A stretch of DNA of 64,000 bases from Chara braunii. Lineage: Eukaryota > Plantae > Charophyceae. The stretch is from contig BFEA01000004.1 of NCBI GenBank assembly GCA_003427395.1, positions 1,965,628 to 2,029,627 of the forward strand, in the 5' to 3' direction. This document shows positions 8,633 to 36,058 of the stretch, one piece after another; the first letter of the stretch is position 1, and every line of letters starts with the position of its first letter. The translations under genes were made by a program, and so were the position numbers. The notes under the pieces are model-generated. The model saw only the letters and a program-made list of their open reading frames with translations, had not been told where the DNA came from and ran no database searches.

Positions 8633-9909
8633 TGAGAGGGATGAGTGAGATGAGAGAAAAGTTTCACAGCGCGGTGACGTCGCGCGGGGATCGCGGAAAA
8701 ACCTGGCTCCCAAGCCACCAGTGGAGAGAACCCGTGTCGTGGAGCTCAACCCGCGCTCCACGGCGGCGACCGGTAGTTCTTGCCGACCGGTAATTGTGTT
8801 GCGTCCAACCCAAGTTTAGGTACGGTGACGCGGTCGGGCAGGAGTAGAGCTGGGGCGGGGACGCTGGCGGGGCTTCGCCGGGGAGCGCAGGGAGGGGAAC
8901 GCGCGGACACCGAGGGTAGGCGTCGGCGGGGAAGCAGTTTACCGTTCCAGGAGCGGGAAGTTTGTCGGTCCATTGCACGGCGCCATGACGCGAGGAGGGG
9001 GTGACTAGTGAGAGTGAGGAGGGGTGTTTGGGGGAAAGAGGGAGGGGGGGGGGCCGTAAGCGGAGCGGGAAGTTTGTCTGTGGGGACCAACGAGGCCAAG
9101 AAGTCAATGGAATAGTTCGTCCCTGGCGTTGTGGAATTAGCGGCCAGGATGTTGCGCGCGTTCGCGTACGCGTACGCCCGTCCCCACTCGCTCAGTCAAT
9201 CGAGGCACTTGATGTGCAGCGGAGGGGAGAAGAGGAGGAGTCGTGGGGAGCGACAGCGACGGACGATCGCCACGTGCACGAAGAGGGTAGACGTAGTACC
9301 GACTGTGCGACGGTAATCAATCAAAACGCACTTACCGCAGAGCCACCATCTCGAAGTGCAGCGGAGGGTTTAGGATTGGATTGGAGGCGTCCCGAGCGTC
9401 TCTGCTGCCGTTCAGTGTTGTTGGCAGGTAAACGCATGGGAGGGGTGAGAGAATGGGTGGGTGGGTTGGAAGGGACAAGGGGGCGGGGGGGGGGGGGGGG
9501 GGAGGGGGAAAGGGGAAAGGAGGGCGCAGGCTACGATGAGTCGTTATGACTAGCTGCCCGCGTGCGACAGGTGCAGCGGCGAAATTGAGATAGCTGCGCG
9601 CTTTGGGTCGCGCTAGCGTGCGCATCCTGCGCGAGGGTCGTCGACTCCCAGCGATCGCCGCGATCCCCTGCAGGACAGGATTCTGGTACTCGGAGGGCAG
9701 TCGACAGGGCGGATACGCTGGAGGGTAGCCTGGAGGAGGAGGAGGGGGAAGAGGTGGTGGAGTTGCTTGGGAGTGTACTGGCCGTACGGGCCTCATGAGA
9801 GTCGCGTCGCGCGCTCGGCGTCCTTCTCGTTCTCCTCCTCCTCTCCCTCCTGCAGTGCACGATGATGCTCTGATTGGTGGTAGTAGACCACGTCCGCTGG
9901 ACAGGGGAC

Positions 9910-12900
9910 ATGGATACTGACGAAGACGAGTTCTTCGAAGCGTTAGAAGAGATCCCTTCCGGGTCCGAGGAGGGGGAAGACGAGCGGTCCAAGCGTCGCC
10001 TGCCCTCTCAACAACAGCAGCAGCAGCCGCCGCCGCCGCCGCCGCAGCAGCAGCAGCAGCAGCCATTACCGCTCTCGCAGCAGCTTCGGCCGCAGCAGCA
10101 GGCGCAACAACCGCAGCAACAGAGGCAGGAGGCAAACAAAGCCTTTGGAGAGGGCGGGGGGGGGGGGGGCGTAGACTGCATTCAGGGGACGGGGCACGAT
10201 GGGTTGGGCTATCATCAACGGGGTGCGGTGGGAGGGAGTTGGGAGTGGGGCAGTTGTAAGGATGGGCAGAAAGAAAACAGGGTGGGTTATGGGAACACGG
10301 GCTTTCGTGACGGCAAGGAGGTCAAGGTGGAAGCACGCAGCATGGTGGTGTCCGGCTCTCGAGATGGCAGCAGAGGGAGGATGGCAGAAGAGAACAACAG
10401 CCGGGGGAGCAGCGGCGGCAGGAACGAGAGACAGTCCTCTCGGAATAACGGGAGTAAGACCTGGGATAGAGTGGGGGAAGATTGTACCTGGAGCGCGGAG
10501 ATGAAGAGGGGGGGGGATTACTCGATGGGATATGGGGGTGCGAGGATGAATGGCGTGACGGCAACGACGACCGTGACGACGAGAACGAGATTGTCAAAGT
10601 CCATGGCGGCGGAACTGGAAAGCGAGGCAGGGGTCGTTGGGATTGAGAGAGTCGATAGCGTCTCGAGAATGGGAGGAGGGGGGGATGTGAGCAGTGGAGT
10701 GGACAAAAGCCGAGCAGTCAGTCAGGGGAAAGTGCGCGAGAGATCATTGACACCCTCCGCGGCGCAACGGGGAGGGAGTTCCTTCTCTGAGATGGACTTG
10801 TCTGTGTGGAAGGATTTGCCGGGGACGGTGAAAGAGAGGAGGGAGAGGTTCTGGCAGAGCTTGAAAGGGAGGAATGGCAAGCTTGGATCGTCCATCGCGG
10901 CGCAGTCGCAACGATCGAGAAGTGTGTCCGTGCCAAAGTCTAACAATTACGTCCACGATTTGCGACCGATCAGAGAGAACGGGATCGGGATGGGTAGTGT
11001 GGAGCAAGGAGGGGAGGAGGAGGCGGTTCCGTCCAGGGCGAGGAGCGGGCTTGGTGGCGGCGGGAATGAAGGAGGAGTGGGGAGGACTAGAGCACTGGGC
11101 CGGAGTCGTCTGCGGCCCACGTCTGCGTCGTCGTCGTCATTGTCACCGCCGGTGGCAGATCGTTTGACGGCGCTGAGGAAAGATGGGGTTGGGGGTTTTG
11201 AACCCGCGCAGAGGGGGGCTGAGGAAGAGAGGAGTTCGATATCGAGGATTGCGAGCTTTGCTGCGAAGCCATCGAGGCCGCTTCAGTCTTGGGTGTCGTC
11301 GACCGCCAACTGGGTGAGGTGGAGGGGGGGATCAGGGGTCTCTCAGAGTCTGGATACCGGTGACGGAAGGGCAGGGTGGGAGGGGTGGGAGCGAGTCGTG
11401 TACGGAGGGGTAGGCGACGAGGGGATGCGATCATTCAGTGCAAGGAAGGAGCGACCCCGACCGGACTGGTTAGCGGACTCCCCCGAGCAGACGGCGAAGG
11501 GGGCGAGATCGGGCCCTTTGTGGGAGCCGGCGAGGACCAGTCGTTGGGATGCTTTCGGTGAAAGGGAGAGGCAGAGAGGAGGAGGAGGAGGAGGAGGGTG
11601 TCCTGACGAGGGGGCCAAAGAAGCGGGGAGCCGCTCTAGTAGTGGTTGTGCGCCCCGGTCGTTGTCCAGAGAAAACGTGGACAACGGCCGCAGAGAAGAG
11701 AAGAGAAGAGACTCGACATCCATCTTCACCACGCCGGCAAATCGGTCCTCGGGGCGGGGTTCGACTGGGGAGGGGGTAGGCGGAGGCGAAGTTGTACGCG
11801 GGACGCGGAGATCGTCGTCGAGGCAGAGACAGAGAGAGGAAGAGGAAGAGGAGGGAGAAACAGAAGAAGAAGTTTTGACGAGCGGGAGGCACAAGCGGTC
11901 GAAGAGCGACCCGAGTCTTATTGGCAGCCCGGGAGCGGAGCAGGAGGCGGAAGTTGGGCGGCAGTCGTATTCCAGGGAGGGGGGGAAGGAAGGGTCCTCG
12001 AGCGGGAGAGCGGGGGCCGGCGAGGTGAGGGCGGAATGGCGCCCGGCGGAGAGGCTAGGGTGTAGTTCGTCCAGCGGGTCAGATGGCGTGTTCGTAGAGG
12101 GGGGGAGGGAGGGGGGGAAGAACGGGGTAGGGGACGGCCGCGGAGGGGGGGGCGAGGCGGACTCTATGCTTAGGGTGCACGATTTCAAATCGGGGAAGGA
12201 GATCGAGGTCGAGATGATTTACAGAATAAGGGACCTGGACACGGGGAAAGAGTTCATTTTGGGGGAGGACTTGTGCGCGAACCCCAGGGGGGCGGGGAAG
12301 GAGGGGAATAGAGTTCACGAGGTTGTGCACGAGGTTGGAAAAGGGGGGAAGCTGGGGAAAGACATGACGCTGGACGAGTTCCAAGAGTCGCTAGGGATAT
12401 ACCCTTTGACGCGGGAGATGGCGATCAGAGAGAGAAGGGAGGGAAGAGGTGGGGGGGTTAAGGAAGAGAAGGGGGGGGATAAAAAAGAAGGAGAGGGGGG
12501 CGGGAAGAAGAAGGGTAGGTGGTTTCGCTCGATTAGAGTGTACGGCGGAGGTTCGAAAGAGAAGAAGGGGGGGAAGAGTGAAGGGGGAGGGGCGGAGACG
12601 GGGCAGGGGGGCAACACGCCGAGAAGCGACACGTCCTCGACCAAGGATTACGCCAGCTGCACGGAGGGGGAGAAGGCGGAGGGGAGGAAAGCGGGCAAGC
12701 GGAAGAAGGGGGAGCAGCAACCGTCCAGCACGGAGACCAGGGAGAAGGTTCATCATCACAGGAAGACCCACAGGGACCTTACCGACTTGAAGTTGGGCCA
12801 GGAGCTGAGGGCTCATGACGGTGCCATTTGGACGATAAAGTTCAGTCGAGACGGAAAGTACATGGCGAGCGCGGGGCAGGACAAAATCGTCAAAGTGTGG

Positions 12901-13236
12901 CTGATACTTGACCGCAAGCCCAGTTCGAACACAAGGGGTAGCGGCGCGAGCGGCGAGGGAGGAGAGGGAGAGAGGGGGAGGACTTGCCGCGCAGACGACG
13001 AATGCGAAGTGGGGAATAGCGGGCGTCTGAGCAGCAGTAGCAGTTCAGGGAGTTGCCACAGCCTGGGGAGCAATGGCAATGGGAGCAGGCTCGGGGGGGG
13101 GGGAGGAAGCGCCCCCGCTCCCCCCGGAGCGACGGCGGGGTCCTGGGGTGGCAGCTTCTACATCCAAGAGACGCCGCATCGGGTCTTCAAAGGGCATACA
13201 GGGGACGTGCTCGACATGTCGTGGTCCAAGTCTCAG
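9910..13236 (+). CDS. WDR44: WDR44-like exon 1 (1109 codons: FFAT-like N-terminus, polyQ/P tract, long G/S/R/E-rich disordered region, first WD repeats)
   Basis: ATG at 9910 ([14 protein letters not shown]); open frame to ...SWSKSQ, then donor CAG|GTAC at 13237. Confidence 0.9.
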
Positions 13237-14719
13237 GTACTACACAAGCATACAAGCATATGACCAAAAGCCTACTGGCCTCCTCCTCGTTGTTGTTGCA
13301 GTTCCACTTTCCCTCCCTTGGACGACTCTGCTCGCTTGCCTCCCCCTCTTTCCTTCCCCCCTACCAACCGTCCGTTTCCCTATTCCGTCGATCGAACCCC
13401 TTTTTTTCCCCCCCCATACCGGGTTATCAATGCACATCCTGTCCACTGGGTTTCGTAATTAAAAAAAAAAAAAAAAAAAAAGGTTTTCGCAACTTCCTGC
13501 CATGCGCCGCTTATAGTACCGCAATTGAAAAAAAAAAAAAAAAAGGTTTCGCAAATCGACCGGTTTACAAATCATCTCGCCTCGTGCAGCAGGGTCAGCT
13601 CGTCACCCCCCCCTACCGTCGTCGTTGGGCTAATCGGACTCCTCGTCTCGCGCATCCGTCTATCCATCCATTCCGTCCATTGATTATTGATTCGGTTGCT
13701 AATTCAACCAATGTCGATCTCCACCACTGCACACAGCCGACTCACGCACGACCAATCAGGTGCAGCGAATGCCAATCTACTTGATTGTATTGTTTTATGA
13801 TACCGATCAACGATCAAACGGCAGTTGTCATCATTACTAATCGACTAGTCATCATTGGGGATTGTGAACCGATGGATTTGGATTGATTGATCCGATGGCC
13901 GTTGGTGCAGATGCTTTTTGCTTCTTCCCGGGGGGCAATGACCGATGGCGATGGACATTTCTGAGGAGGAGGAGGAAGTTGACAAGAGACCAACTTTTCC
14001 TCCTGACTTTGGCGACCTAGCAGGGCCGCGAATAGACTGTATGGGTCTGGTTTGGGTTCTTCCGCGCGTTCAGCATTTGATGACGCTTCTTCCGTCTCGT
14101 CGGTTTTACATCTACGATACGAGTGAACCGTCATGTCATGGTCTTACGTTTCGATGCTACCAATAGGCATTGCAAGCTTGTCCATCTCAACGATTACCAT
14201 TTCCGTAATTCAGAGGTGGCATCCTCGGTGGGCGCGCTTTCCCCCCCCTCTTGCCCGGAGTAGATGCGCTCATAGTATATATATGTACATATGTATATAT
14301 GCACAGTGACAATTACTTAATACAGTAGATGGTAGGGGAAAAAATGCAGCAATGTGTCAGATAAACGGAAAATTTGTCGGTAGGTAGAGAGCCCCAACTG
14401 CCGCTGTTCTTACAGTACTTATGTGTTCTTTTAGCAAACTGACAAGATCTGCTCTCTTGATGATGAGGGTAACCGGTTGGATGAGGAGGGTGGATTAGTC
14501 TTTTCCACTTCGCCGGGAGAAGTACGCGGTGCGGTTTGTGAGGTGATGATAACTCCACTGCACTCCTTGGTAGTCTGAGTAGCAAAGCTGTCTCTTATAC
14601 ACATCTAGATGTGTATAAGAGACAGCCACTGCACTGCTTGGTAGTCTGAGTCTGACAGCATGTGAAGGCTGTGAGTTGTGCAGTTCAACTTTGCCCGTCC
14701 TAAGTGTACTGCCATCCGC

Positions 14720-14759
<40 letters not shown>

Positions 14760-16406
14760 CAGTTCCGCTGCGCAAAACGAATGAATGTGTATACGGGTTT
14801 GCGAGCCTCCTTAACAGATAAGCTGACCGTAGATCGCGCATTGCCGAGGAATCGACGGACGACAGCTTCTCGGTCTTGCGGGGGGCACTGCAGAGACCCC
14901 GTTCCAGTCTCTTTCTAGACCCTCGGATGTCAGTCAGAAGCATGGGACCCCGTCATGTCTATTATGGCGTATTACAGTTAACTCTTTTAGAGTTATGTAT
15001 CTGTTTCTTTGTCTCCTTCCTATGGCCATTTTTTCCGCGTTTGGAAAATGTGCGAACAGGCTCTGCAGGACTGATGGTGGTGAGCAATTCGGTCGCTGGC
15101 TTGCACTGACGCGCCCGCGAAACCAACTAGGGTCTGCACGAAGATTGAGTCGATTATGTGCTGAAAAAGACGTGTTCTCGCTGACTGATAGAGTGCTGTT
15201 CTGTTTCGGCACACAAGGGTCAGAACGCTTGTGCTGATTGGTTGACCCTTCGACCGGCTTGTTTGATTGGTGATTGGTGGGTTGGTTGATGTGTTGATTG
15301 AGGGGATGATGACTCAGCGGATTGATGGGGTTATTGATTGATTGATTGATTGATTGGCGGGTAGATTGATTGACCGATGGATTGCGTGATGAATCGACTG
15401 ATTGGATTGATTTTTATTACTAGTAGTCGTAGTAATTGAGCGAGGTGTTGATTGCCTGTCCAATCAGGGCGGTTAAGTTGTTGGTTGAGCAGATGATGGT
15501 TGGGGTTTTGCTCCTATATCACATTTGTTCGCCGAACCGTTGTGGCTCGTACTATGTCTCCATCTCGGCGAACCCTCCTGAATTTCTCCGGGCGTGCTCG
15601 CACACGACTTTTTCGATTGAACTCTGGACTTCATTGCGGTCAGATACATCCATGATGTGCTTATTGTGGCCAGATACATCCAGCAAAGTCTTAGTGTGAG
15701 TATACTCTCCTCCGTCCGGGCAACCCATCCTGTCTCTTTAGTCTATCGTGCGGAAGTGTTTCCGGTGACGTGTCGAACAACGGAGAGCGTACTCACACGA
15801 GCACTTTGCGAAACGCATCTGACTGTAATTACGTCCAATCCTGGACGAATCTGACTGCAAACACGTCCAGAGCTGTGTAGAAAAAAGTCCCTGCGATACC
15901 GCTGCCATTGATTGGCAGTGCTGCTAATGATCATCATGCTGCTTCGATCCATGATGATGACGACGACGAGTTGCCACGTGTCATTCCCGTGCCTGCTGTT
16001 CGTCGATGTCATGGATGTTGGCCCAACGGTTCGTTGACGGTGGACAACTGCCAATCAGCGCTACTAATGATCATCACGCGGCTTCGATCCATGATGATGA
16101 CGACGAGGAGTTGCCACGTGTCATTCCCGTGCCTGCTGGTCGTCGATGTCATGGATGTTGGCCCGACGGTTCGTTGACACGTGGACACGTGGGCGACGAT
16201 CCGAATTGCGGTCGACCGAGAGCGTCGGAGGTAGCGAGGGTAAGGTGTGGGAGCGAGCAACGACGTTGGGAAGGGAGGGAAGAGGGAGGGAGGGAGAGGA
16301 GAGGAGTAACTGCGAGGAGAGGCACGCCGTTGAGGAGCGGGAGAGAGGAGAGGAGAGGAGGAACTGAGCGTTCGGCTGAGGATCGCGAGAGGCAGTTGTT
16401 GGGGAG

Positions 16407-16491
<85 letters not shown>

Positions 16492-16887
16492 GATTTTGTT
16501 CCCTTATTTGTAGTGTGGTAATGGTACGGAAAACAGGAGCACAGCTGCTGCTATCGTCTCTTCACCCGGCTAAGGTCATTATCACTGTGTCTAGACTCGA
16601 AGCAACCCCAAATACCGGTGTAATGACTCGGCGTTTTATTCCGGTGAAGACGGTAGGTGCGCCCTCCCACCCTTGGGAAAATCTCCTACAGAGTAGAAGC
16701 TAGACCGGGGACGACAGTTCGACGCTTGTTTGAGAATGGAAGATTCATTCATGCAGCTGTCATAACGCGAAAGGCCAGCTCGCCGGTGTCCATCTCCACC
16801 CAATGTGTTCTCTCTCGATTCGACACGTGGCTGTCCGGGAATAGATCCGGTTTGGAAATGAAATCGTTGGACCCTGGCGGGGGGGGG

Positions 16888-16931
<44 letters not shown>

Positions 16932-16941
16932 NCGCGGGGGG

Positions 16942-17003
<62 letters not shown>

Positions 17004-20000
17004 AGACCTTGTAGTGTGGATGGGAGGGGGAAAGACCAAAGGCACAGGTGAGAAGCAAGAAGGCGCAAATGCACGGGTGGATGTTGGAACAGCAGTTAGG
17101 TGGAATGGGAGCGAAGTCGAGACTGGAAGCGGGTGGAGGGCTGAGGGGATAGTCGCCCTTGCAGTCCTCAGAATGCATCTGACCGCAATTACGGCCAGAC
17201 GTGGAATCTGACTGTCCAGAATCATCGTCGAAAATCTCCCAGTGTGAGTATGCCCTGAGGGGGAGAGGAGCTAGTTGTGCACCTAAAGTTGGGACTGCTA
17301 CTGGACGTGGATCTGCTGGAGTGGTGGAAGGCATGGAATCTGCGTAATAATGGGAAGCTATGGCTGTCGACCTTGAGGGCATGCTTACACTACTGTAGCA
17401 CTTTCGGGGATGTATATGATCGTTTTCCCGACCTGGTCAGGATGCACCTAACCGCTATTACGTCCACAGAGAAGTGAAAAAACTCCTAGGGTGAGTATGC
17501 CCTGAGCGGGTGGTTGGAGTATCGTTATCCATCCTGAGTGTGAAGGGCTTCCCGCCCCCTCCCACTGACTGAAGTATATAAATAAATAGGGCTCTCTCGT
17601 CTCGCTCTTCTTTTCGTTCATTCATCCTTTTCGCCGCCCACCCTTTCACTGTGGTATCGTCATTCATGGTCGTCCTTATCTGTCCAATCGAAGCCCCCGG
17701 GTGTTGGCCCTTGCTCCGTTACTCAACATTTGACACTTATCTGAACTGCTATGTGGACCAGATTCATTACTCTATTGAACATTTTGAACGTATTTGGACC
17801 ATGATCAGCTCCACATACATTTGGAATGCTGTGCAGTGGAGCGAGGCCCACCGAGTCTCGTCACCCAGATCACGTTGTCCTTATCCGTTCCAAGCCCGGG
17901 GATTCGGCGCCTCGCCGCTCAACTCACCAATTGTGAAAAAGACGAAAGTATGGAGGGTGTACTTCTCCACGTTCTAGCACGATATACATTTTTTTTATTT
18001 TATTTTTTTATAATTTGGTGAGAGGTCCGGCGAGGCCCTCAGTGCCGTCCGCAGATCTGCTCCCAATTTGACTGCCCCATGTGACATCATCGCCCGCGTT
18101 CTCATTTGGTCATGCGCAAGCCATCCCCGTTTGATGATACGTTTTTGCTAATGACTTAAAACACGCGAACGCAACGCACCCGCATTTTGGCTGCACCTGG
18201 CCGATTGTATACATTCGGTATCGGCGTGCTTTGTGTTCGGGAGAGGGCGGTAGTCAGCATGTTTTACCTACCGTCTTCACCCGAATAGAACGCCCGGTCA
18301 TTATAGCTGTATATTATAGCTGTATTTGGCACACCTTTCGGTCCAGGTGCGGCGATAATGACCGGGGCGTTCTATTCGGGTGAGGACGGTAGTGCGTGGT
18401 TATTAATCAACGTTCTGTTTTTTCGTTTTTGGTTACTAATCTAATCAAATCAGCGCGAAACTTCGTTCCTGTAGAGCTCTTTTTTTTTTCAACTGGTCTA
18501 ATGATGACGTAATTACAGTCAGATACATCCCGCATCCGGCTGTAATTGCGGTCAGAATACGTTGGTGAATATGTTTAGCTAATTCCTCGTCTGAGTGATT
18601 ATGGCCTTAATGAACTTGTCTGTTGCCCAATCGACTCAAACGTAGTTAGCTCGTCAATCGATTCGCAATGAATGAACCAATCAAAGTGTCATCAGTAGCT
18701 AGCTGTTAACTGTCTTGTCAATCTCGTTAATGTCTTCCGTCAATTGATGACCAACCGACCAATACATTCATTCATAATGTGATTATGTGAGTCGTGCACA
18801 TCACTGGAGCAATCAGGTCAGGCCCTCGTCAGTGTAATGAACCCATCAAATCAACGAGACGATGGCTTGAATACTAACGACGTTCCTATACTTCCTATCG
18901 AAATCAACGAGATGATATCTGAACTATTTATCGAAATCAACGAGATGATAGCTGAACTATTCACAGCCACTGCGGATTCAATTGTACGTCTGTCTTCATT
19001 GAACCTTACCGGGAAGGGTTTTGTTGGTCCATGGGAGGGATGCCGTCTATATTCGGCGGCCTTCCCCCCTCATATGCAATCCACGGGCGAGTTCATTGCG
19101 CGCCAGTTATGCAATCCACGGGCGAGTTCATTGCGCGCCATTTGCGCTGTGTGCGAGCCCTCCTTAGTAATGTGCATGTCACTCCATCAAGGCCACCACC
19201 TGTTGACAATCGCAGACTTTTTTTTTTTTTTTTCTGCCCCCCCCGCAGGGCGCATGTGATGTGTGTTGATACTCTTGGACATCTTTTAAACCCATCTTTT
19301 AAACCCTGCCCCCGCAAGTTCTTGAAAAAAAAAAAAAAAAAAAAAAAAAGAAAGAAAGAAAGAAAAAAGAAAAAAAAAGTTCAAAGTTGCTGAATTCACT
19401 TGCAGCTTGCAGTTGGGAAGAAAATATACATAACGTACATGCATGACACACATATTATTAAATTCGGAATTACGAAGAGAGAAAATGCACTCGCAGTTAA
19501 TTAAAAAACTCGCAGTGGAGCAGTTGAAAAAAAAAAACAAAAAAAAACTCGCAGTTAATTAAAAAATATGGGGTTGGGCGGGCATATACGGGGAACATGG
19601 AGGAGAGAAATCAGAGAGGCAGAGAGAGAAGTAACTGGTAAACCCACGTTAGGTAATCGGGCCGGGGGGGGTGCCTGGCTCGGCGGCAAAGCAAAGTATA
19701 CATTCGTTCTACCTTCCTTACAGTCGGCAGCTAGTGGGATGCATCTCCGGTCAATGTGAAGATACGGTAGGGGAATGCCACTGAATGGCAGATTCGACAG
19801 ATTGGGATATTGTTGTTGGGGGGGGAGGAGGAGGATTGGGGGAGGTTGGCGTAAGACTCATATCATATTTCCTCCTCGTTTAATCACGACAGAGCAATTT
19901 TTTTTATTTTTTTTTCTGTTTTTTTAATCACAACAGCGATTTTATCGTGGAAAAAAGTTTTGATTTTGTTTTTCGTTTTTCCTGTTCAATTTGGTTAACA

Positions 20001-20445
20001 GTTTCAGTTCCGAAAGATTTGTGCGGCAGTTCCGAAAGATTTGTACGGATGTACGGAGAGGCAACATTCGAATGATTGCCTGTTTGGCTTTTCCTTCTCG
20101 AGACGGGGTGCTTGCCTGCCTGCCTGCGATTCTCCCTAGCCCGATCCCGATCTCTCCCGATCTCGAGCATCGTCGTCCATGCCTGCCCTTTGTTATGCCG
20201 AGGTCATCATCTCGCTCCTTACCAGACCTGCATTTCCTTAAAACTCAGTCTCGTGGCGAGGTAAACGGCCGCGGGGCCTTATCAGACCCACCAATTCAAT
20301 AATCCGACGCCGCGCCTTCCCTTCTCTCGCATCTGATCTTCCCCCCCGCAGTTTTGTAATCATGTGGACATCGCGCAATCTTCTCTTTCCCTCGCGTGCG
20401 ATCATAAGTGTGTTTTCATAAATCTCGATACGCATGGTCGCCCTT

Positions 20446-20511
<66 letters not shown>

Positions 20512-20522
20512 TGGGGAGGGGN

Positions 20523-20557
<35 letters not shown>

Positions 20558-20912
20558 AGGGGTGAATGAAAGCGTAGTGTGTAATTTTGTACATAGTGGG
20601 AGAGTAGTCGAAAATGTTCGAGTTGTCTTTCTGCGCAGCAGAGAGAAAAGGAAGTAATTGCAGCAATCGGCTTTTGTGACGGCAATCAATCAATTAGCGG
20701 CTTCTTCATGACAGTCAAAATGAACGATCCGATGCTCGCAAGCTCGTCTCCCTGGAACTCGCCACGGGGGACGACCTGCCTTCTTCCCCCTTTCATCTCC
20801 TTCATCTCCTTCCCCTTTGCCGAACTCCATCAGGACTTGGTTCTTCAGCGCTCCTCCCTCCCTCTCGTTCGATTGGGGGGTTGTTGAGGTATTGCGTACG
20901 TCGGGTCGACGC

Positions 20913-20993
<81 letters not shown>

Positions 20994-22378
20994 GAAACCC
21001 TGTGTCTGGATGGGTGGCGAGGGTGGAGGACGATTTCCGCTCCTTTCTCCTCGTTCTGTCACGCTGGGACGAACCTCCTGTGGCCACCCCTCGTTACTCG
21101 CTGTGGAGGTGTTTACGCTCTGTTGTCTATTGATGAGATGTCAATTCACTGTCTGCGCCCCCTTGGATGTACGCGCTGGCGCGCTAACGCTGTATGGGTT
21201 TTGCAATTTGTGCTGTACATGGCGTAGGTAAGTCGCGTCGAATGGGGAATAAGGGTTGACGGTTCGCCAGGGGCAAGATTTCGCTCCGCTTGGGGGTTTG
21301 AAAATGGGCTCGTTCTTGCTGGTGTGAACTGTAGGGGGGGGACGAAGAGCCCCCACGTTTTCGTAAGGTGGAAATGGTGACAAGGTGCAGTTGTAGCCTT
21401 TCCTGCCGGGACTGGAAGGGAGGAAAGCTTTGCGACTGGCGGAGCGAGCATCTCTACCACCATCTCTATCTCTGCCCTCTCTCTGTTTGCTTTTGGCCGA
21501 CGCTCCCCGGGAAGCCGATGAGGGGAAACCTGAGGATCGGCTCCAGTAACCTGCCGGCGGAGTGGAAGGGGTGTGATCGAAGAGTGGTTTCTGGAAGTAG
21601 CCACGTCCGGGAAATGCGACGAAGAAGGGCACAGGAATCAGAGCCCTAGCCTTCTTGCGCAGAACTCTGTCGTTTTGCCGTGCCCATTCGTAGGGGTCGG
21701 GTATATTAGGAGGGTATGCACCTATCGTGATCCCAGGGGTGGTGCTGCTGCCTTTTCTGGGTGGACTTGTGACGAAAGGCTTCTTTGCAGGAGGCGGCGG
21801 CGGCGGCTGCTGCTGCGGCTGCTGCTGCTCCTGCGGCTGCGGCTGCGGCTGCTCGTGCGGCGGGTGAAGAGTGGTGGTGAGATCAGCGGCGGGCTTCACA
21901 TGCGCTTTGGAAGGGTCGTTCATGTAAATGTGCTCGAACGGAGGGCCGATGGTGCCATAGAGAGAACCGGAACCGGTACTTTTCTTGGTAGGGTTAGGTA
22001 GATGGAACGGCTTGAGCCCGCGAAGGGTATCGTTCTTGGCCTTCTCCTCTTGTTGCTGCCAATACCATGGATCACGGTACAGGTCTCCGTCGGACAGCCT
22101 ACGGACCTTCTTCTCCAGCCATGAACTGGGGATGTCCACCTTGGAAGGGTACTGGACGGAGAACTGCCGGCCCCTGTGTCTTGGTAATGAGTCGACTTTC
22201 ACCGGGTACTGGACCCCCAGGTTGATCGAACCTGACCGCCTAAAAATGCCCACTCGTTCTATATCCATCTCTCTCTCTCTCTCGCTCTCTTTCTGTGTGT
22301 GTGTGTGTGTGTGTCTTGGCTCTCTCTCCTTGTGTTTATCTGTCTGTTCTGTCGTTCTGTTTCTCGCTCTCTGTGTAA

Positions 22379-22440
<62 letters not shown>

Positions 22441-23747
22441 GTGTCTCTCTGTGCGTCTACCTGTCTCTCTCTCTCTCTCTCTCTGTGGCGGGCGGGCGTT
22501 TTTTTCCCTCTGTCGGATGGCGGACGTTTTTTCCCCTCTGTCGGATCGTTTCGAGAGTTTGGCAGCTCTGCGGAACTGCGCTATAATCAGCAGCAGCAGC
22601 CAGCTGTAGTGAGCCTCAGCAGCAGTAATCGGACGGCCAGAAGTCGGAGGAGGAGGAGGTAGGAGGAGATTTGCGTTAGGTGAAAAAAAAGAATTCAGGT
22701 ATATATTGATGATGATGTGTGTTGTGTGGATGCAATGCAATTCCTCAGGGACAGATACGACAGAGGTCAATGCTTTACGTTAGTTGTAAAAGAATTGAGC
22801 GCTGCCACGGGGGCATGCTATGCTGTCATCATAAATCGGAAGGTCCGTTTGCTGCGCGGAAATCATTCTTCGTTCGAGAAGACAAAGATACGCCCCCTCG
22901 CTCCACCACACAACACTCTATACAAGAGTCTGGAACAGGTGCATTGGGACGAGTCCCACACTAACACTTGGAATGCATTCAGTCTAGAAGGGCGTCCAAA
23001 TGCATGTCGAGTTGTGGAGCCAGGCAGGCCCACAGTGCTGTCTTCACCTCGGGTCTCTTTTGTGAACCGACATCGCACTGTCGTCAAACGCTGCTCTGGA
23101 AAAGCTGCCGGTTGAACCTACCGTCTTCACACGAATAGAACGCCTGGTCATTATCGCCGAATCTGGACTGAGAAGTGCACCAAATACGGCTATAATGACC
23201 GGGCGTTCTATTCGGTTGAAGACGGTAGTGTGCAGGGGTGGCTGCGAAGGAGCGCGCAGTCACGCGCGCGCATCATGGATCGATGATCAGATTCGTCCGT
23301 TCCTTTTGGGCAAATTCATTTCATGTCACCCTCGACGCGCTGTCGAGATTCGACACTTTCCTTAGCAAATCAAAAGCTTCCCTAACCTCTTCCTGTAACC
23401 ATAGTGCTGTTGCAGAGGGCTGCCCGCGAGTGTTGCTGAGGAAGAGAAGCTTGTGGATACGAACGCCCGCCCTGTGGAGCTGGTTGGTCTTGATGGAGAG
23501 GGAGTATCCTGCGTGCGTGATCCGACCTCTGTTTCATAGCAGCTGCCCTTTTGCCAGGAAGGCTGAATCGCGCGTTCACACGGGGGCGCGCAGGAGGCAA
23601 TGCTGTTTGCCGAACGCTGCCTCAACGAGGGAAGGAGAGAACCGACCTCTTTCCGGCGTGCAAATCGGACAGATCCTTGCATCGGATTTCAAAGAAACCG
23701 TAGGCAGGGCGTGAGCGCGTGCCTGCGCGCTGCTGCCTTCGCTCATA

Positions 23748-23797
<50 letters not shown>

Positions 23798-24913
23798 GAA
23801 GAAATGTGAGGGATTGATCGTGTCCGCAGTGGCGCTTTTCTTGGCTTGGATGATCGAGATCGGGCGCCGTTGGTTGGCTGATGGCTGATTGGTGGACGTC
23901 TCGGCCCTTGGATGCGAGAGCGTGCTGAGCGGCTGATGTATCACCACCATTCACGACCCCTTACGCTGCTTGAGGGTCACCGAATATTATGAATCTCCGA
24001 AGAGGCGTCCCTCCGCTTGAGGCGAGTCCCATATGATCCGCGTATGGATGGTCGCCGGGAGGCCAGGGAAAACCAGGGAAACCAAGAACCGCGGGTTCAT
24101 GCATGCACGTGGCAGATTATCGTTTGCGTTCGCGCGGGACCGAACCAAAGACCACTCGCGAGGAAAGACGCGCTGGAGGTGACACACGAAGAACAGAAAA
24201 CGCTTTTGATGAGACCGGCGAAGTTCCGGCGGGAAAAGCGCAAAGCGGCTCTGAAACATCGTCCGTCGTCTTTTTGCTAAGCGTGCGTGCTAATTTTGTA
24301 CCTCCCGCGTGCGTGCTAATTTTGTACCTCCCGCGTGCGTGCTAATTTTGTACCTCCCCGCGCGCCTTACCCCCCCCCCCCCCCCTTTCTTGTGTCGGGC
24401 CTCTTGGATCGGCAATTTCTGTGGCACTACGTAGCCGTTTTTTTTTTTTTTTTTTTTTTTTTTTGAAAACGTAGCCGTATTTGCTGGAGCGTGAGTGATG
24501 GTTCGGCTTGGGGCTTTCTTTGCACTCCAGACCAGAAAAAAAATCGTCTTGCATTCGCGGGCTGGCTCCTTACACTGTAGGGAGTTGCGCTATTTCAGTG
24601 GCGCTCTATAATTAGAGTCGGAGTCAGCAGAGCTGCTGCTGTGTTGTGCGAATGAGCAGATCGTCAGCGAGAAGTGTGCAAGCAGCAAACCCAGCTCCCA
24701 CCTAACCTCTAGTTTTTTTTTGTTTTTTTTGTTTTTTTTTTAATCTAACCTCTAGTTTAATTAGATGCCAGTTCAGTTTCAGACTGAGGTTGAAGATGCT
24801 TGCACCTTCAGATGCGTGCAGTAGTAATGTGCAAATCTGAGGGTGTTTTTATTTTATTTTATTTTATTTTATTTTATTTTGCCTCTTGGACCTTTTTTTT
24901 TTTCCGCCCCCTC

Positions 24914-24951
<38 letters not shown>

Positions 24952-27771
24952 CATTTCTCGAGTTAGCGTGTCATCCTTGCGCAGGGGCCATGCTAATCTT
25001 ATCTGTATCGTTCCAATTTTGACGGATGTCACGAAGGACCTCGAGTTCTTTTCATCCTTCCCTACTGGTACTTCCTTTCAAATGCGAGAAGCTTCTCAAA
25101 AGTGTACGGTTACTTTTTCTTTTTTTTTCCTTTCTTTTTCTTCCGGTTGCTTGCTTGCCGCTAGAAGGATCATTCATACCAGAAGCGTCGTTTGGTGGAG
25201 TAGCGCCTATGTCTGACATGGGGCAAGGTCTCGTTTGCACGGATTACGAGATTTCGGCCGTTAATCTTCGTTATTTACGGCCGATATCTCTGATCTAGCC
25301 CCAGAGAGTGGCTCCTATTCTTCCCCCTCGCCCCCCCCCCCCACCCCCCACCGCCCACCTCTTCTTTTTTTAAGAAGAAAACAAGCTCCTTTCCAATGGT
25401 GGGGAGCTGCCCCTGCTGGAAATTGGCTCCAGCGTCCCTGAATTGAGAGAGAACCCACTCACAAAGCTTCCCGTTGTTAGGACCTCTTCATTCTCTGTTT
25501 AAAAAGAGAAAAATATTTAAAAATCTCTATAATGGAGCATGTTAGTGCTCTCCTAACTTTTATCACCCGATATCGGAACTGTCGACCAACCTCTGAGCAG
25601 TGTCCGATCTTATCCACTCGATGATAAACTTATCCGCTCGATGATAATCGTATCCACTAGATGAGGCTTCCCATCCCAGTTGTTACGATACTCGTGGATT
25701 CCAGGATGCTGTCCTCACATCCAACGTGCTTGCACTTTCTCTGGGGCTCGTTGCACCTCTCAGTAAATGCATAAAAGACGAACTCTGGCCGTGTACCTTT
25801 CCATGTTATATCGGAAAATGCATTCTCATTTTGCACATTTGGTGAGTGCTGTGGTGAGACCCTCTAAAGCAGAACTGTGCAAAACTGGCAGGAACGGCGG
25901 ATGTACAGTACGGAATGAGAGGAGCCAGAATGACTCTACATTCTTCCCCCGAACACAGCGCACCCTCATCACGACTGTATTGGACTGGAAAGACAGCTTG
26001 TATGCGCTCATGAAGAGGGTGTGTTGTGTTCCAGGGAAGACTGTAGAGCTGACTGGGCAACAGTAGTAAATGTGTATGAATGTGTTTGGTGTGGGATAGG
26101 AGGCAGTGATTGTTTGATTGCCGAAGTGAGCAGGGGTGTAAAAGTGTCGACCTGGAGGATGCAAATGGTCTCCATGCCCAAATGTCAATTTGAGACCAAT
26201 TTTTTTTTCTTTTTCTAAAAAAATAAAAAAATCTGAGGTCATTTAAATCATGTGACCATCCAGCGCTCCTATGGATTGAAGCATACAACTCGGCGAAGTG
26301 CAGTTGCATATGCACTAGCTGTCGTTTCTATGGGATTGCAGAGTAATTCGCTGGTAGTGGGAGGCGGGGGGGGGATACTGGGGGGAGGAAATACAGGAGG
26401 AGAATGCTGGCGGGATCCAACCTGACAGAAGTGAAACTTGTCTCCAGCTCCTGTGAAGTTGCCTGAAACTTCTGTCGTCTGTGAAGTCTGCAGAATAATT
26501 TGCTGTTAGTGGGGGAAAATCAAGGAGGAGAGAGAGAGAGCGAGCCACAGCCTCGCGTTTTGTTCATGAACCATTTACGGTTGTTCGCGGCACCATGTTC
26601 TTTCTCACCTCGTGAAAGCGAGCTTACCTTGACAAGAGTGGAAATTGTCTCCAGAAGGTCCTGTGAAGATGGGGAATACCTGGAGCTTCTATCATCTGTG
26701 AAGGCTGTGGAATAATTCGCTGGTGGTGGGGGGAAATCGAGGAGGAGAGATCTAGCCACAGCCTCACGTTTTGTTCATGAACCATTTGCGGCTGCTTGCA
26801 GCATCATGTTGTCACGCCGAGAAAATCGAGCTTACCTTGACAAGAGTGGAACTTCGTCTCCAGGAGATCCTGTGAGGTTGCGGAATACCTGAAGCTTCTG
26901 TCGTCTGTGAGGTCTACATAGCATGGGTATGATTAGAACGAGCGGAGATGGGCAGATGGGAAAAGTGGTGATTAGGGCATGGACGGAGTTGAAATCGTGT
27001 CGGGGACAACGGCGAGGGAGAAAAAGTGTAGCTGAGGCTGATAAATACGGTATGGTTATAGTAATGTGTATGACAGGAGGAAGCACTGACGCGAATGGAT
27101 GGAAATGAAATGGGGCATATGGATAGGACAGGGAGCAGGGTGGGTATGAGAGAGGGAGAGCAAGGTTTGCGGAGGTTCAAGAGGCAATGGATGTGAGAGT
27201 ATTGGTGTGCACATGAGAGATGTGAAGTAGATGGCGAGAAAGTTTCTGTTTTGGCGAGAAGCTGCAGGGAAGTCTGTTTGGGCGAGAAACTGCGAGTTAG
27301 GGTACGAGGAGCTGCAACAGGGAACTGGGGTGCAGCAACAAGCACGCTAGGAAGGAGAATCAAATAAAGAGAGAGAGAGGGGTGGGAGTACTAGTGGCCC
27401 TGGGGCACAACACGGAGTTTTGGAGGATGGAAACGACGCAAAAGAGTCCAGGAAGACATGTTGGAGGATTAGGGATGAAAGGGGTTGAGAAACAGAAGGG
27501 GAAGCTCTTGTAGGGAGACGAATGTATGTGGAGGAGGCCGAAAGAAAGCCGCAGTAAGATTGTTTGTGTACATGATTGAGAATGCTTATGACGGAAGTTA
27601 TGAGGATTGCTGCTGCCCTTTCAAAAATAGTCGGGAAAAGGAGTTTTCTACATGGCGTGAAACACTACTTAAGAAGTCTTCATGCATTTGTTGCTGGCCG
27701 CAGGAAACGGCTGATGGAGAAGGTGGGAGAAGGGGGTGAAGGGGAGGCGGGAGAGATGGAAAGGGAAGAGG

Positions 27772-27830
<59 letters not shown>

Positions 27831-30692
27831 GAGAGAGAGAGAGGTTAATACACGTTGTTTCATGGAAGAGTTCAAAACCCCTTTTAGGCTGTGGCACTAC
27901 AGCTTTCTTGTAAAGATGATAAATGTGACGGCTGTGGCCTTTGAGCGTCTAGCACTTCTGCTTGCATACAAGGGCTGACCTGTTTGAGGAGTACTTGTAC
28001 TGTTGGCCAGACATCACTACTGGACTTTTGCTACGAAGAGCAAGAGGTTGCAAAGTTGTATTGTCTGCACGTGGGAATACAGAAGCTTCTCTTGGTATTA
28101 AAAGAGACTGGTCACAGTCATGTTGTGTGTGCTCTTTCTTTTGCCTCCCATTTTCGTAGTGCGTTTTCACAGTCGGTGAATTAGCTTGGTAGAGGTTAGG
28201 AGTCAATGCCCGGTCATCAATAGACTCGTTAAGAGTCATTATAGCCATGTTTGGTGCAATTTTCAGTCCAGATACAGCCATATAATGACTGGGCGTTCTA
28301 TTCTGGTGAAGACAGTGGTCTAGATTATGTAAGCCGTTGCGGGCTTGTTTGTGTCATTTGTGAAGGTGTGAATCCCAATACGTGCCATTGCAGTAGCTTC
28401 TTGGACGTTTCCCCGTGAACTTACGTGCCATTGCAACTGGAAAGTCGATAAATCTCGAGGCGCATTTCTATGTCCAGATCCAACAGAGCAAGTGCATTGA
28501 AATTTTTAATCTCTAAGAGAGCATTACATGTTCAACTTGTTTGTCAGCAACCGAGATTTGCCGCTCTTTCTTTTTTCTCCCTTCTTTTCATTCCTTTTTC
28601 CTCCTCTTCCTTTTCTTTCCTGCTCAATTTATGAGTGTCGTCCTTGCACAGGGGCCACACTAATCTTCTCCACGTTGCTCCAATTTTAACGAATGTCCTG
28701 AAGGACGCTTTGCCACTCTAGGTGGCCAAGGGAGCTTTGAATTTTTCAAATCGGCGGCTGCGCTTGCCCACAGAGCCGCAGGGCAAGAACACTGGAAACG
28801 TCGCAGTCAGTAATCTAGTATTGTGTGGGACAATTTCTGACAATGAATGGCTGGGCATCTATCTTAAGATGGCCACCGTTTTCTACAAGATTTTTCTTCT
28901 GGTGGAGGTTTCAGGGGCTACCCACAGTGTGGTTTGCGGGGCTCTGTTGTTTCGCCTGGCAAAATCTCGGTGAGCCAACAGATCCCTCCGAGAACAGACC
29001 GTCGGATGTGGACACAGAGCTCCTCTGTTCCGTGATTAGTATCAGAAGAAAACCATTCCCCTTCACTGGTAGTGGACTTTTTCCGTGGTGCCCCTTGGGA
29101 GTCCAAAAAGATCCTAGATGCATGGGATGTTGACTGGTAATTGGTTCTGATGTGGACTGCGCCTTGTTATTTGTTATCAGCCCAAATGCGGCGAACAAAT
29201 GCAGTCCATCAGCTGGTCTTTTGTTTCTTTTTCCCCCTTTCTTTGCAATGTAAAAGCAACTCCTTCCCCCAAGTAGAAGATCGGGGAGGAAGCGTAGAGC
29301 ATGTCATTCTTGTTTTTTTTGTGTGGGGGTGTGGGGTGGAGGGGTGGAGAGGGGGAGAGAGAAAGATGGGAAGTTGAGTAATGAGAAGGAAGGAATCGAG
29401 GGAGGGAGGGAGTGAGACTGACACCAGTGTGCGATGGGTTTGTTTGATTATCTTGCGCAGTTTCTCTTGACGTCATCAATGGACAATTCTGTCCGGCTTT
29501 GGCACATTTCTGTCGACCAATGCCTGCGTGTGTTTCCTCACAGTGATTTCGGTACGTGCCTCTGTCCTCCTTGGCTTACCCATCTTTGCGATGCCTACTT
29601 TTCTGCTTCCCGTTAGAGGTACTATTCGTTCCTCGTTGTTCTTGTGGTTGTGTGAACCTGGTCGGGAGAATGCTGGGAAGTGTCATGGGGTTCGAAAGCG
29701 AACTAGGTGGCTCTGATGACGAACCACTGTGTTCTCAATATGCCTATCGAGCAAAGGATTGGTAGTCCGGTGCATGCTGGCCTTTACGTGTACAGATCCG
29801 TTTTCCGACTTCCTTTGTCTTCCCGGCCCCAGCAGTCAAATTGCCTCTTTGACGAGTAACAGCGGGAAAACAATGGATCCTAATAATGTCAACGAAACGA
29901 AGAGAGTATACCTTTCTGTTTCCTGAGCTGGTATCCGATTGTGTCGAGTTCTTCCTATTTGCGCTCGAAAAAGAAATGACTGATATGTGCTAGTTTGTTT
30001 GCCATGAACTGGAGGATACTTCCCTAGAAATCGAAGGCCATGGAGCTGCCCCTCTGTGATCTGATTGCCTGTTGTTGTGGACATTGCAAATATTTATGAA
30101 CATTGTGGACATCGTCACATGTTCCCAGCTGGATGAAAAAGGTTTATTAAGGGGCGCACCACCTTTTCAGTATCAGTCCTGACAAGTTTCTGAGCGGTGG
30201 TGCTCGTCCTCCCCTTGAAATCATTGAGATCTGATCCTTCCTACCTTTTTGTTGAGATCTTAGATCTTGTTCTACCTGCCCCAAACTCGAGCAGTCAGTT
30301 CAAGATGTGTTTCTAAAACATCATAATTGAGAAGCAACCTACCTTTTTTGTCGATATTTTTTTTGTCCCTTTTTTGTCGATATTTTTTTTGTCCATCCGT
30401 CCCTCGCCTCCTTGCTCCCTTCTCCTGCCACTGTCATCTATGTCGGCATCGTTTGTGATCATCATGGTCATCGCGAGTGTCCCCCCCCTTTCCCCCCCCC
30501 CTCTCTCCCCTCTGCTCCACCAACCCACTGGACGCTGTGCATCCTTATAGTTTCTCTGAAGTCAAGAATCTTTTCTAGGGTAAACTTCACGGTCATTGTT
30601 TCCATCGTTATCATTATCATCGCCGTCCTCGGCATCGACGTCATGTCATCTCTACCCTTCTGCCAACCATTGGACACGAAGATTGGAAACCC

Positions 30693-30755
<63 letters not shown>

Positions 30756-33700
30756 GCATGAGTGAAGTGTTCTGAATGTGGCGGTTTGATTCTCTCCAAC
30801 TTGCACATGGTGTGGTTACTTCAGTTGTCAGCAGGAGCATGCTGGTAGGGGATGGATTGTTCAGCCCTGACTGCTGAGTTGGCATCAGGGCTTGTGACAG
30901 TGGAAACCGTGCTGGAGCTGATTTATGTTTAGCCTGAAGAGGGAGATATACTTTTGGGAGGAAGGAGGTCACTTGATAATCCTGTTTTGCAACAGGGGTG
31001 CTGCGGTTGTGGATTTGCAGTTCATCTTTCCCCCTGTACGTTAACGCATGTTTCTGCGTTCCTTTTGTTTTCTTTTTCTCCCTTGCGGTTCAGCTTGTGA
31101 TTTCCTGATCTGTAACAAGATGGTGATCCATATTGTGCATGTGGTGTTATGCAGTGACTTGTGTCGACTTCAATCCTGTTGATGACAAGTTCTTCATAAG
31201 TGGGTCTTTTGATGACAAGCTAAGGATCTGGAACATTCCTGACTTCTCGGTTGCGGACTGGACAGACGTTCGCGAGATTGTGACCACAGCCTGTTACACC
31301 AGGGATGGGAAGGTGAGCTAACTTGACGAACAGGAGGGTTTTCCTCTTTTTAATCGTAGGTTCGTTTTCTAAGTCATAATGCAATGGGGATGGCCGCCAA
31401 GCCTCTGGGGGAGAAGATGAACGCTCTTCACACTGTTTCTTCTCTGGGTTTCAGGGTGTTGGGGGTGAATATGGAACATTCAACACTGGATGTTGAGCTG
31501 GCGACTTTCACCGCTTCGCGCCTAATTCACCGCCTACGTGCCCTTTACGCCTAGTCATTCCGAATAACACTTGCCCCCCCCGGACAGCTTGATCGTGTTT
31601 ATGCAAACTACCTTTCAAGGTAGTGGTTGTGACACACGTGTGGACTCTTTTTGCATGTCTGTTAATGACTGTTCATGCCAGACTCTGCGCTGAGCCACAG
31701 GTGGCTCCATTTGGTGCGAAGCACAACACCCAGCTGTTGACCATTGCTGGGGAGTACTTCTGTGGGCAGTTCTGGATGCATGATGAGTGAGGGGAGTGCA
31801 TGCTCCGGGGAGTACTTTTGTGGGCAGTTCTGGATGCATGATGAGTGAGGGGAGTGCATGCTTCAGCTTTATGTTTGTCTCTCCTTGGTACCTGTAACAG
31901 ACCTAACACGACAGTGGTATTGGGAAGGTGCATCCAAAGACAGGCAGACCGGTGTCCACAGTCCATCTTGCCTGCAGTACTTGGGTGTATATAAGGACAG
32001 GAGCGAAGCTGAACATCGCTGGTTGAAGTGAAGCCAAGCTCTGTTCAAGCTGAATATGGTGCAAAGCTTAAACTATCACTACCCCCGACGGCTGAAATTC
32101 GGCTTTCCTGGGGGGCGACGACCGGCAGGCGCAGGCGGGTCCAGTCCCGAGATTTTCAAGCACCAACTTTGGTGATTTTTCACGCTCAGAAGAATTGACG
32201 AAAAATCTGAAAATTGGAGATCCTATAGATTAGGTTGTGATCTATCCAGGAAAAATATCAGAAAAATATTTATGAAAAAAAATTAGACCGCGAAATGAGT
32301 GCTGCACCGATTCGTTGCCTTTTGCATTTTTGCCAGTCTACCACGTGTTGGCCAATGGAAAAAGTACCCCAACTTCTGCATTTTTTTGCGCGCAGAAGAA
32401 TGACTCGAAAGCTCTGAAAATTGGAGGGTCTGTAGATTTGGCTGTGATCTTTCCAGGAAAAATATTAAATTAAAAATAAAAATAAAAATAGTTTCAACTG
32501 CGAAATAAATTGCTGCGGCAATTCGATGCATTTTCCATTTTTGCCACTCGGCCGGTTCTCCCCACTGTGCTACCGTTAATCCTCGTGAACCTGTGCTACC
32601 GTTCCCCCCCAATTTAGGACGGCGGGGGTAGGGGTGGTTTAACAGCCAGCTGCAGGCCATAGGTGAGGAATGCAGGCTCATCAAGCAGCGCCAAAAGCCT
32701 TGCTTTTGTCAGGGGATCTGCTTTTGATGGTGTAGAGTCTGTAGACTGATGGCCCCAACATGACGGAGCATTCATTGTCTTGTCATAAATAACTGCTGTT
32801 TTTGAGAGGCCGAAATGTCCCGCCAGGACTCCAGGGTTCGTCCAAGAGCCTAGGTCTTTTGCTTGAGCCTAGGTTTTTTGCTTTGCGAGGGGGCAATATT
32901 TGAAACTTACCCCACCTGTCACTAATCTGCCAAGGCCAAATTAAGAAAGGAGAAAATAAAAGGAGGTTTAAATTTTAAATTGAAACAGGGGAAAAAAGGT
33001 GGTGCCAACATCTACGAAATGGAAGATTGCAAGAGAGAAGACCGAAAAAGATGCACCTTGGAGAACCCAGGACAGACTCGCAGTTCAAATTTGTGCCACA
33101 GTAGTCAAAGGCTCTGTGGCGGATAAGACCAGGACTTGATGAAAGGGAGAGAGGGAGATGTATCTGATAGCCCTCGGTCATCTCTCGTTGGGACAGGGAA
33201 AGGGCAGAAAGAAAAGACAAGATAAAGAATAGTCTTATCATCACCACCAGATTCATGACAACTCAGGGCACGCTTTCGCTTGCTGCTGTCCTCCCTGGAC
33301 TATTCACATGAGGCGTTATCTCTTGGAAGTCCTATACTGCATTGGGCAGTGCTGTGAGGGTCACTCTTCTTTGGCTTTACATGGAGTCGAAGATTGACAG
33401 GGCGAGCAGCATAAGTAACCACCCACTGCAGATGTGGTGGCCCGACCATCGGCGGGTACAGGTATGAATGATGCTACGTGGGCTGGGTGGTACAATCTGG
33501 GGTACATGTGTGATGCTGTGTGGGCTGGGCTGCAGAACCTTCGTTCCCCTCCACAATCGCTAAATGAAGGAGAAGCGAAGAGGACTTTCCCGGAGAGGGG
33601 GAACTCCAGTGCATGTGATGTTGGAAGCCCTTTCCTTTTGTTTGGAAGGCCTTTTCGCTGTGTATACCCCTTTCTATAGGAAAAGGGGGTAGCCATTCAC

Positions 33701-34451
33701 AACAGATCCGGCCACAATCTGAGCTCGTGACCTGCTCTCGTCCACATGCCGCAGGTGTGTACTTGTAGTGCTCTCCAGCAACACTGTCGACTCTATTCAA
33801 ACACAGTTCCGGATAAAGAATGAAGCCCTGCAAAATGACGCAAATGAAAAACGGAAACAACAATAATGAAAGCAAAGGCAAACTACATCAGAAGAGCGGA
33901 AACAAAGGAACAACCCCTAACATTATTCCATTTGTCTGATTCCATCGTGATTCGCTCTTGCACCTGTGAAAATAAGCAGAGCAAAGGAGCAATTCAATTA
34001 ATAATGTAGCGTTCGCCCATGCAAATAAGAAATGCTAAGGAGCTTGTGACCTGCTCACTTACAGTTCCCCGTGGGAAAGTTTCCCTTGGGCCCATTAGGG
34101 CCTGTCTTCCAAGATCCACTTCTTGAAGTAGGTATTATATGGATAATAACAGGGTTGCACCCCTGCCGACCGCCGACCCCGACCGCCGATCGTATTGCAG
34201 CCGACCAGTAGGACCGATTGGTCGGCGGTCTGCCGACCAGTCAGAAAACAACCATCCACTGATTTTTAAAAAAATCTGAGTTGGGGGCTGTGCTGCGCTT
34301 GCCGAGTACAGCCCAAATCCGCTGAGAAACATTTGGGGATTTGGGGGGGTATGGGGGGGTTGGGGTTGGATCATACCTGCGGCGCAAGTGTGCTGGTCAC
34401 CAATGCGAAAAAAGAAAAGAAAAAGCGGCTGTTATGTGTGAGAACACGCGC

Positions 34452-34525
<74 letters not shown>

Positions 34526-35988: not shown

Positions 35989-36058
35989 NNNNNNNNNNNN
36001 NNNNNNNNNNNNNNNNNNNNNNNNNNNNNNNNNNNNNNNNNNNNNNNNNNNNNNNNNN

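Follow-up and report, generated by a model that had tools for sequence, protein, structure and literature searches.

How does a gene for a ciliary protein come to lie, without a single coding intron and in antisense orientation, inside the first intron of a WD40 gene, and does this position carry any meaning for the formation of cilia? The question is raised by a stretch of 64,000 nt from Chara braunii (contig BFEA01000004.1 of assembly GCA_003427395.1, positions 1,965,628 to 2,029,627 of the forward strand), which is called the window here; all coordinates refer to it. A comparison of the window with this contig over 60,270 nt gave 0 mismatches. Chara braunii is a streptophyte alga with flagella only on its sperm, which are biflagellate. 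A preliminary description of this DNA, made from the letters alone, had supposed a streptophyte with cilia only in sperm, and the species agrees with that supposition.

A CFAP96-family gene absent from the public annotation

The open reading frame (ORF) in question occupies positions 21141..22268 of the minus strand, where the ORF listing of the window gives an ATG start and an intact frame of 375 aa plus a stop codon in a single exon; the coordinates in the preliminary description proved correct to the base. Based on the ORF list, the Pfam search, and the alignment, the ORF is a complete gene of the CFAP96 family. The Pfam profile CFAP96-like (PF15239; formerly named DUF4586, with the synonyms CFAP96, C4orf47, and FAP96) matched it with an E value of 1.9e-35 and 123.9 bits at a gathering cutoff of 27, and residues 2-337 of the ORF aligned with profile positions 2-290 of 296, both termini being covered. 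This score, which far exceeds what chance would give, and the expected order of the motifs confirmed the earlier assignment to DUF4586/C4orf47. NCBIfam returned no match to the ORF, as expected for a eukaryotic protein.

In alignment A1, which comprised 25 sequences with the Chara protein as the first row, the conserved blocks GIF, RHRGRQF, GDxYxDP, and KKSxGxGSxYGT, as well as the further blocks TSPxKKG…TIG, DPY, PSSPxxKGYN, and FKPxSGxKSxP, were all kept in the same order. The Chara protein matched 49 of the 68 columns (72%) that were conserved at ≥60% in the other members, and all six invariant family columns were kept. Retention of conserved columns ranged from 66% to 91% across the accepted family members, and Chara was on a par with Mesostigma, Sanguina, and Polytomella. 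Two low-complexity insertions were specific to Chara in this alignment. The first, a poly-Q/P stretch at approximately residues 120-165 (21700..21910, minus strand), is encoded by a repeat of the GGCTGC/GCT type and includes a tandem repeat at 21793-21861 in its coding region, while the second is S/R-rich. The sparing of the core despite fast evolution argues for continuing constraint on the Chara protein.

The A1 profile matched chain 8otz_W among the solved structures with an E value of 2e-77, as well as 9cpc_6C and 8snb_1A, and chains named CFAP96, C4orf47, FAP96B, and FAP96C were matched in the entries 8otz, 9cpb, 9fqr, 9cpc, 8snb, 9e78, 9y6s, 9e2g, and 9e5c. Used without the profile, the Chara sequence reached only the FAP96B chain 9e2g_4K, with an E value of 1e-3. 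Cryo-EM models of doublet microtubules from cilia and sperm contain relatives of CFAP96 as resolved chains; 8otz and 8snb are models from sperm, of cattle and sea urchin, respectively. A GFP fusion of human C4orf47 was found on cytoplasmic microtubules and cilia (10.1101/153437), and a full-text literature search returned no paper giving the position of CFAP96 in the axoneme. The solved chains together with this localization indicate that CFAP96 is a structural microtubule/axoneme protein. In Chara, the protein is presumably used in the sperm flagella only.

When 1.84 billion cluster representatives were searched exhaustively with HMMER, 57 relatives were obtained, the best with 38% identity and 101 bits, and no cluster above 40% identity that held the Chara ORF or a close paralogue. 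A word-indexed search of 5.8 billion proteins returned neither the ORF itself nor any match to it, and the word search seeded with the family alignment returned 17 proteins, mostly from animals, which were uninformative on land plants. The public annotation has one gene in the 60-kb locus and no gene call at the ORF, and an exact look-up of the ORF product gave no gene call on record. Chara CFAP96 is absent from public gene calls and protein sets. The exhaustive search found no second Chara member of the family in the protein sets, and judged by these public sets, Chara braunii has no detectable CFAP96 gene other than this ORF.

The nearest named relatives were green algae (Mesostigma viride, Bryopsis, Sanguina, Polytomella, Pyramimonas, and a pedinophyte), followed by flagellate protists (Acrasis, Pharyngomonas, Diphylleia, Ancoracysta, and Pigoraptor) and then by animals. 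In a maximum-likelihood tree, Chara CFAP96 fell inside a clade of Mesostigma and chlorophytes (support 94/87), which agrees with vertical descent. The terminal branch leading to it was very long, 2.03 compared with a median of 0.84, and could mean relaxed constraint. None of the 30 named family matches came from a land plant, a count that is not proof of absence. Bryophytes and ferns do make motile sperm, and two explanations come into question: loss of the family in embryophytes, or members there that are too divergent or unannotated.

Transcription was assessed with three raw oligo-dT RNA-Seq runs from 2026 (X17, X18, and X19), which are bulk libraries and were sampled at 6-13% of each run. 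The reads were mapped over a 5,001-nt stretch, in which the microsatellites flanking the ORF on both sides were skipped. The depth over 21103-22271 was 0.1-2.4, corresponding to roughly 2, 8, and 1 read pairs in the three runs. About 5 of the approximately 11 pairs over the ORF had the first mate on the plus strand, which is the orientation expected of minus-strand RNA if the libraries are of the dUTP type. Pairs of this kind were found only within 21103-22104, in all three runs, and this confinement has a chance of about 0.001 if the pairs were spread evenly. The flanks were empty outside the repeats in X17 and X19, while those in X18 were covered 0.6- to 1.7-fold, entirely by pairs with the first mate on the minus strand, and the ORF had reads in this run as well. 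This handful of reads is suggestive of a discrete minus-strand CFAP96 transcript. Another 16 sequencing runs (X1-X16) contain the ORF, none of which is on record as RNA. Run X1 was rejected as expression evidence, since its even 3-7x depth over the ORF and the flanking intron looks like low-coverage DNA. A contig join in X1 (19915→24367) was likewise rejected as an excision, since it sits in poly-T tracts and represents a repeat artefact.

The very long branch, the two low-complexity insertions, the very low read depth in the three RNA runs, and the failure of the genome annotators to call the ORF would all suit a non-functional or decaying retrocopy that is still open by chance, in which case a working CFAP96 gene, if any, would lie elsewhere in the genome of roughly 2 Gb or in an assembly gap. 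However, the frame is open over 375 codons and complete at both termini, and the conserved columns are retained to the same degree as in three of the green algae; at an identity of only about 30-38% to every relative, this indicates constraint over the whole time since divergence. Furthermore, the exhaustive search gave no other Chara protein of the family, and a gene used only in sperm would be expected to show little expression in bulk tissue. We consider a decaying copy improbable; the Chara CFAP96 gene is real and probably functional.

The host gene and the antisense arrangement

The gene surrounding the ORF is CBR_g38417, which spans 9910-50270 on the plus strand according to the public annotation and tblastn. 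Its 1597-aa product (P0001) carries the UniRef name "WD repeat-containing protein 44" and was the best database match, with 100% identity, to the long plus-strand ORF at 9874-13263. The host exons were placed by tblastn of the reference protein P0001, exon by exon. Exon 1 (9910..13237) codes for a long N-terminal part of low complexity and for the first WD40 repeats, and ends at the donor CAG/GTACTA at 13237/13238; the plus-strand ORF 9874-13263 carries a WD40 repeat (Pfam WD40). Intron 1 comprises 16,222 nt (13238..29459) with GT..AG borders, as supported by the splice sites, the annotation, and the alignments of land-plant WDR44 proteins, and exon 2 starts at 29460 after the acceptor, TTGCGCAG/TT. 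The exons downstream of this intron were located by tblastn at 29460-29562, 31154-~31340, 35400-35459, 39476-39559, 40769-40912, 44821-44967, and 49407-50270.

The WDR44-named proteins of Riccia and Acacia aligned contiguously across the junction of exons 1 and 2, with the WD40 exons, and also at 12217-12906, upstream of the WD40 repeats. Since the homology extends outside the propeller, it is reasonable to label the product of CBR_g38417 a WDR44-like WD40 protein with a predicted C-terminal WD40 propeller. A PDB search for a WDR44 structure returned generic WD40 proteins only. The N-terminal extension of the Chara protein measures about 950 aa, is low-complexity and G/E/R/S-rich, and lies within one 3.3-kb exon; the total length of 1597 aa far exceeds the 940-1087 aa of the land-plant homologues.

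The whole CFAP96 gene lies antisense within host intron 1. This intron contains single-N positions at 16932 and 20522, and since the ORF and exon 2 are located on one gap-free stretch (20523-34709), these joins cannot undo the nesting. The nesting put forward in the preliminary description was thus upheld, with exact borders. A further single-N join of the window is at 34710, and its assembly gaps are N runs at 3263-3554 (292), 6533-6975 (443), and 35989-36058 (70). Several of these gaps and joins adjoin long homopolymer or microsatellite tracts, which are probably what broke the assembly.

CFAP96 shares the intron with other sequences. Rfam identified two U6 snRNA copies on the minus strand, one of full length (86.5 bits) and one weaker (51.1 bits), at 24940-25039 and 28606-28706. 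At 23116-23229, a palindromic element that resembles a MITE spans about 113 bp and ends in inverted repeats of about 35 nt. It occurs in very many copies (summed contig depth in run X1: about 6000) and gives rise to "opposite strands" joints at 23136/23217; in the RNA-Seq data, both of its strands are abundant. This element was ruled out as an RNA gene, since it had no Rfam or tRNA match. None of the 8 other ORFs of at least 130 aa in the intron had a Pfam match, and the intron is also rich in microsatellites.

The preliminary description had proposed that the two genes form a sense-antisense switch, in which antisense transcription of CFAP96 during spermatogenesis would interfere with WDR44 and lower a brake on ciliogenesis as the flagella form. 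The antisense arrangement within intron 1 is real, and the brake itself is documented in mammals, where WDR44 holds back the initiation of ciliogenesis via Rab11 (PMC10774338, PMC9808001). However, CFAP96 is a structural axoneme protein and not a regulator, while genes of the WDR44 family persist in flowering plants such as Acacia, which lack cilia; the role of the plant protein is accordingly not cilium-specific. The RNA reads, too few for a firm comparison, show no anticorrelation: in X18, the one run with a measurable signal, they are located on the ORF as well as on the flanking intron, and in X17 and X19 on the ORF only. Moreover, introns make up about half of the window, so that landing in one of them needs no special explanation, and the intron with its two U6 copies and the MITE looks like a general landing area. 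On these grounds the switch was not sustained, and we regard it as very improbable.

Intron history and origin of the nested gene

Coding introns were found in the CFAP96 genes of three chlorophytes, namely Sanguina (gene of 4,343 bp, 307 aa, at least 5 introns), Bryopsis (1,665 bp, 227 aa, at least 5), and a pedinophyte (1,639 bp, 306 aa, at least 3), as well as in two animals, the aphid Melanaphis (3,201 bp, 318 aa, 5) and the turtle Chelonia (23,091 bp, 299 aa, 5). The genes of Acrasis (933 bp, 310 aa) and of an ENA eukaryote (855 bp, 284 aa), both from intron-poor genomes, had 0 coding introns. Chara CFAP96 also has 0, a figure that refers to the coding sequence and not to untranslated regions. 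The absence of coding introns noted in the preliminary description was borne out and is strengthened by the at least 3-5 introns of the chlorophyte and animal genes.

When the intron positions were mapped onto the Chara protein by alignment, which is approximate within 1-2 residues because the positions were taken from tblastn segment ends, an intron near Chara residue 26 was common to Sanguina, Bryopsis, the aphid, and the turtle. Another near residue 201 was common to Sanguina, Bryopsis, and the turtle, and one near residue 143 was found in both animals. The comparison was made without Mesostigma, whose gene structure is not on record. Since intron positions are common to green algae and animals, the ancestral CFAP96 gene had introns, and Chara lost all of the coding ones. 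Judged by these alignments, the intronless coding state of Chara CFAP96 is derived.

This wholesale loss points to an RNA intermediate, and an RNA-mediated origin, whether as an orphan retrogene or by cDNA-mediated intron loss, is plausible from the gene structure. Under the explanation that we favor, the spliced mRNA of a CFAP96 ancestor with several coding introns would have been reverse-transcribed in the germ line, and the cDNA copy would have entered the long intron 1 of CBR_g38417 in antisense orientation. The intron-bearing parent would afterwards have been lost, leaving the copy as an "orphan retrogene". After insertion, the copy would have evolved fast and gained its two low-complexity insertions while keeping the conserved core, and the nesting would most likely be incidental to its landing site. 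We assign a probability of roughly 0.62 to this explanation as a whole, in which a probably functional CFAP96 gene became intronless by retroposition into the host intron and lost its parent.

No poly(A) relic or target-site duplication was seen beside the ORF, whose flanks are dinucleotide microsatellites, and a repeat search found microsatellites only, with no LTRs, terminal inverted repeats, or target-site duplications around it. The nearest A-rich tract in sense orientation is located about 1.2 kb 3′ of CFAP96. The hallmarks of retroposition decay with age, and their absence is therefore weak evidence. The retrogene origin suggested in the preliminary description is favored by the intronless and derived state of the gene; with neither a poly(A) relic nor a target-site duplication, it is plausible only.

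A microsatellite tract that is GA-rich in sense orientation lies directly 5′ of the ATG (22269..22500, minus strand; identified from the sequence and its tandem repeats) and is presumed to be the 5′ UTR or core promoter region of CFAP96. On the other side, 146 nt 3′ of the stop codon, the repeat search identified a compound (CA)14(AG)27 microsatellite at 20913..20995, which is the reverse complement of (TC)13(TG)10 at 22268-22314, so that the pair brackets CFAP96. The inverted arms measure 62 nt, are 87% complementary, and lie 1271 nt apart. These microsatellites could mark the ends of an inserted unit; the 64-kb window contains 43 dinucleotide runs of at least 8 units, and the bracketing may therefore be due to chance.

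The missing poly(A) tail and target-site duplication, as well as the absence of a second copy from every protein set, would also be in keeping with a gene that has long resided at this locus and lost all of its coding introns there, via recombination with its own cDNA or by stepwise deletions, with no move. By contrast, the disappearance of at least 5 introns from one short gene combined with an intronic position gives the classic picture of an inserted retrocopy, and the missing hallmarks weigh little since they decay. We regard loss in place as possible and on the whole somewhat unlikely, and its cDNA-mediated form is a serious rival to retroposition.

Significance and comparison with known systems

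A nested gene and complete intron loss both represent known processes, and retroposition of CFAP96 into a host intron would involve no new mechanism. What is new is the unannotated CFAP96 gene, its derived intronless state, and its grouping with green algae on a very long branch. Chara braunii is the main charophycean model alga, and its reference annotation gains a missing CFAP96 gene. A conserved protein of the axonemal doublet microtubule persists in a streptophyte whose sole flagellated cells are sperm. Since the 30 named relatives include no land plants, Chara may also help to date the retention or loss of CFAP96 toward the land plants.

A wider interpretation, which we consider unlikely, is that germline (antheridial) mRNAs were reverse-transcribed and that the sperm-flagellum genes of Chara systematically lost their introns in this way, with CFAP96 as one instance. 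If this were true, it would amount to a genome-wide, cell-type-biased, RNA-mediated remodelling in an otherwise intron-rich genome with long introns, and annotation pipelines may also tend to miss genes of this kind.

Opposite-strand nested intronic genes are common in animals and plants. Chara CFAP96 resembles them in that the whole gene lies antisense in one host intron, and the Chara pair is structurally ordinary compared with known nested genes, while the pairing of an axoneme protein with a WDR44-like protein is suggestive by mammalian analogy only.

Orphan retrogenes are retrocopies that have outlived their parent gene (PMC3548309). Chara CFAP96 is similar to these in lacking the introns that the ancestral gene had, with a new-looking context in the intron of another gene and no parent visible in the protein sets. 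It differs from them in that poly(A) and target-site duplications are undetectable and the loss of the parent from the genome is putative.

Within the CFAP96/C4orf47/FAP96 family, the Chara protein stands apart through its very long branch, an identity of at most 38% to any relative, and a length of 375 aa compared with about 290-320 aa in its relatives, which is due to the poly-Q/P and S/R-rich insertions. In profile score, full-length coverage, and motif order, it is like the other members of the family.
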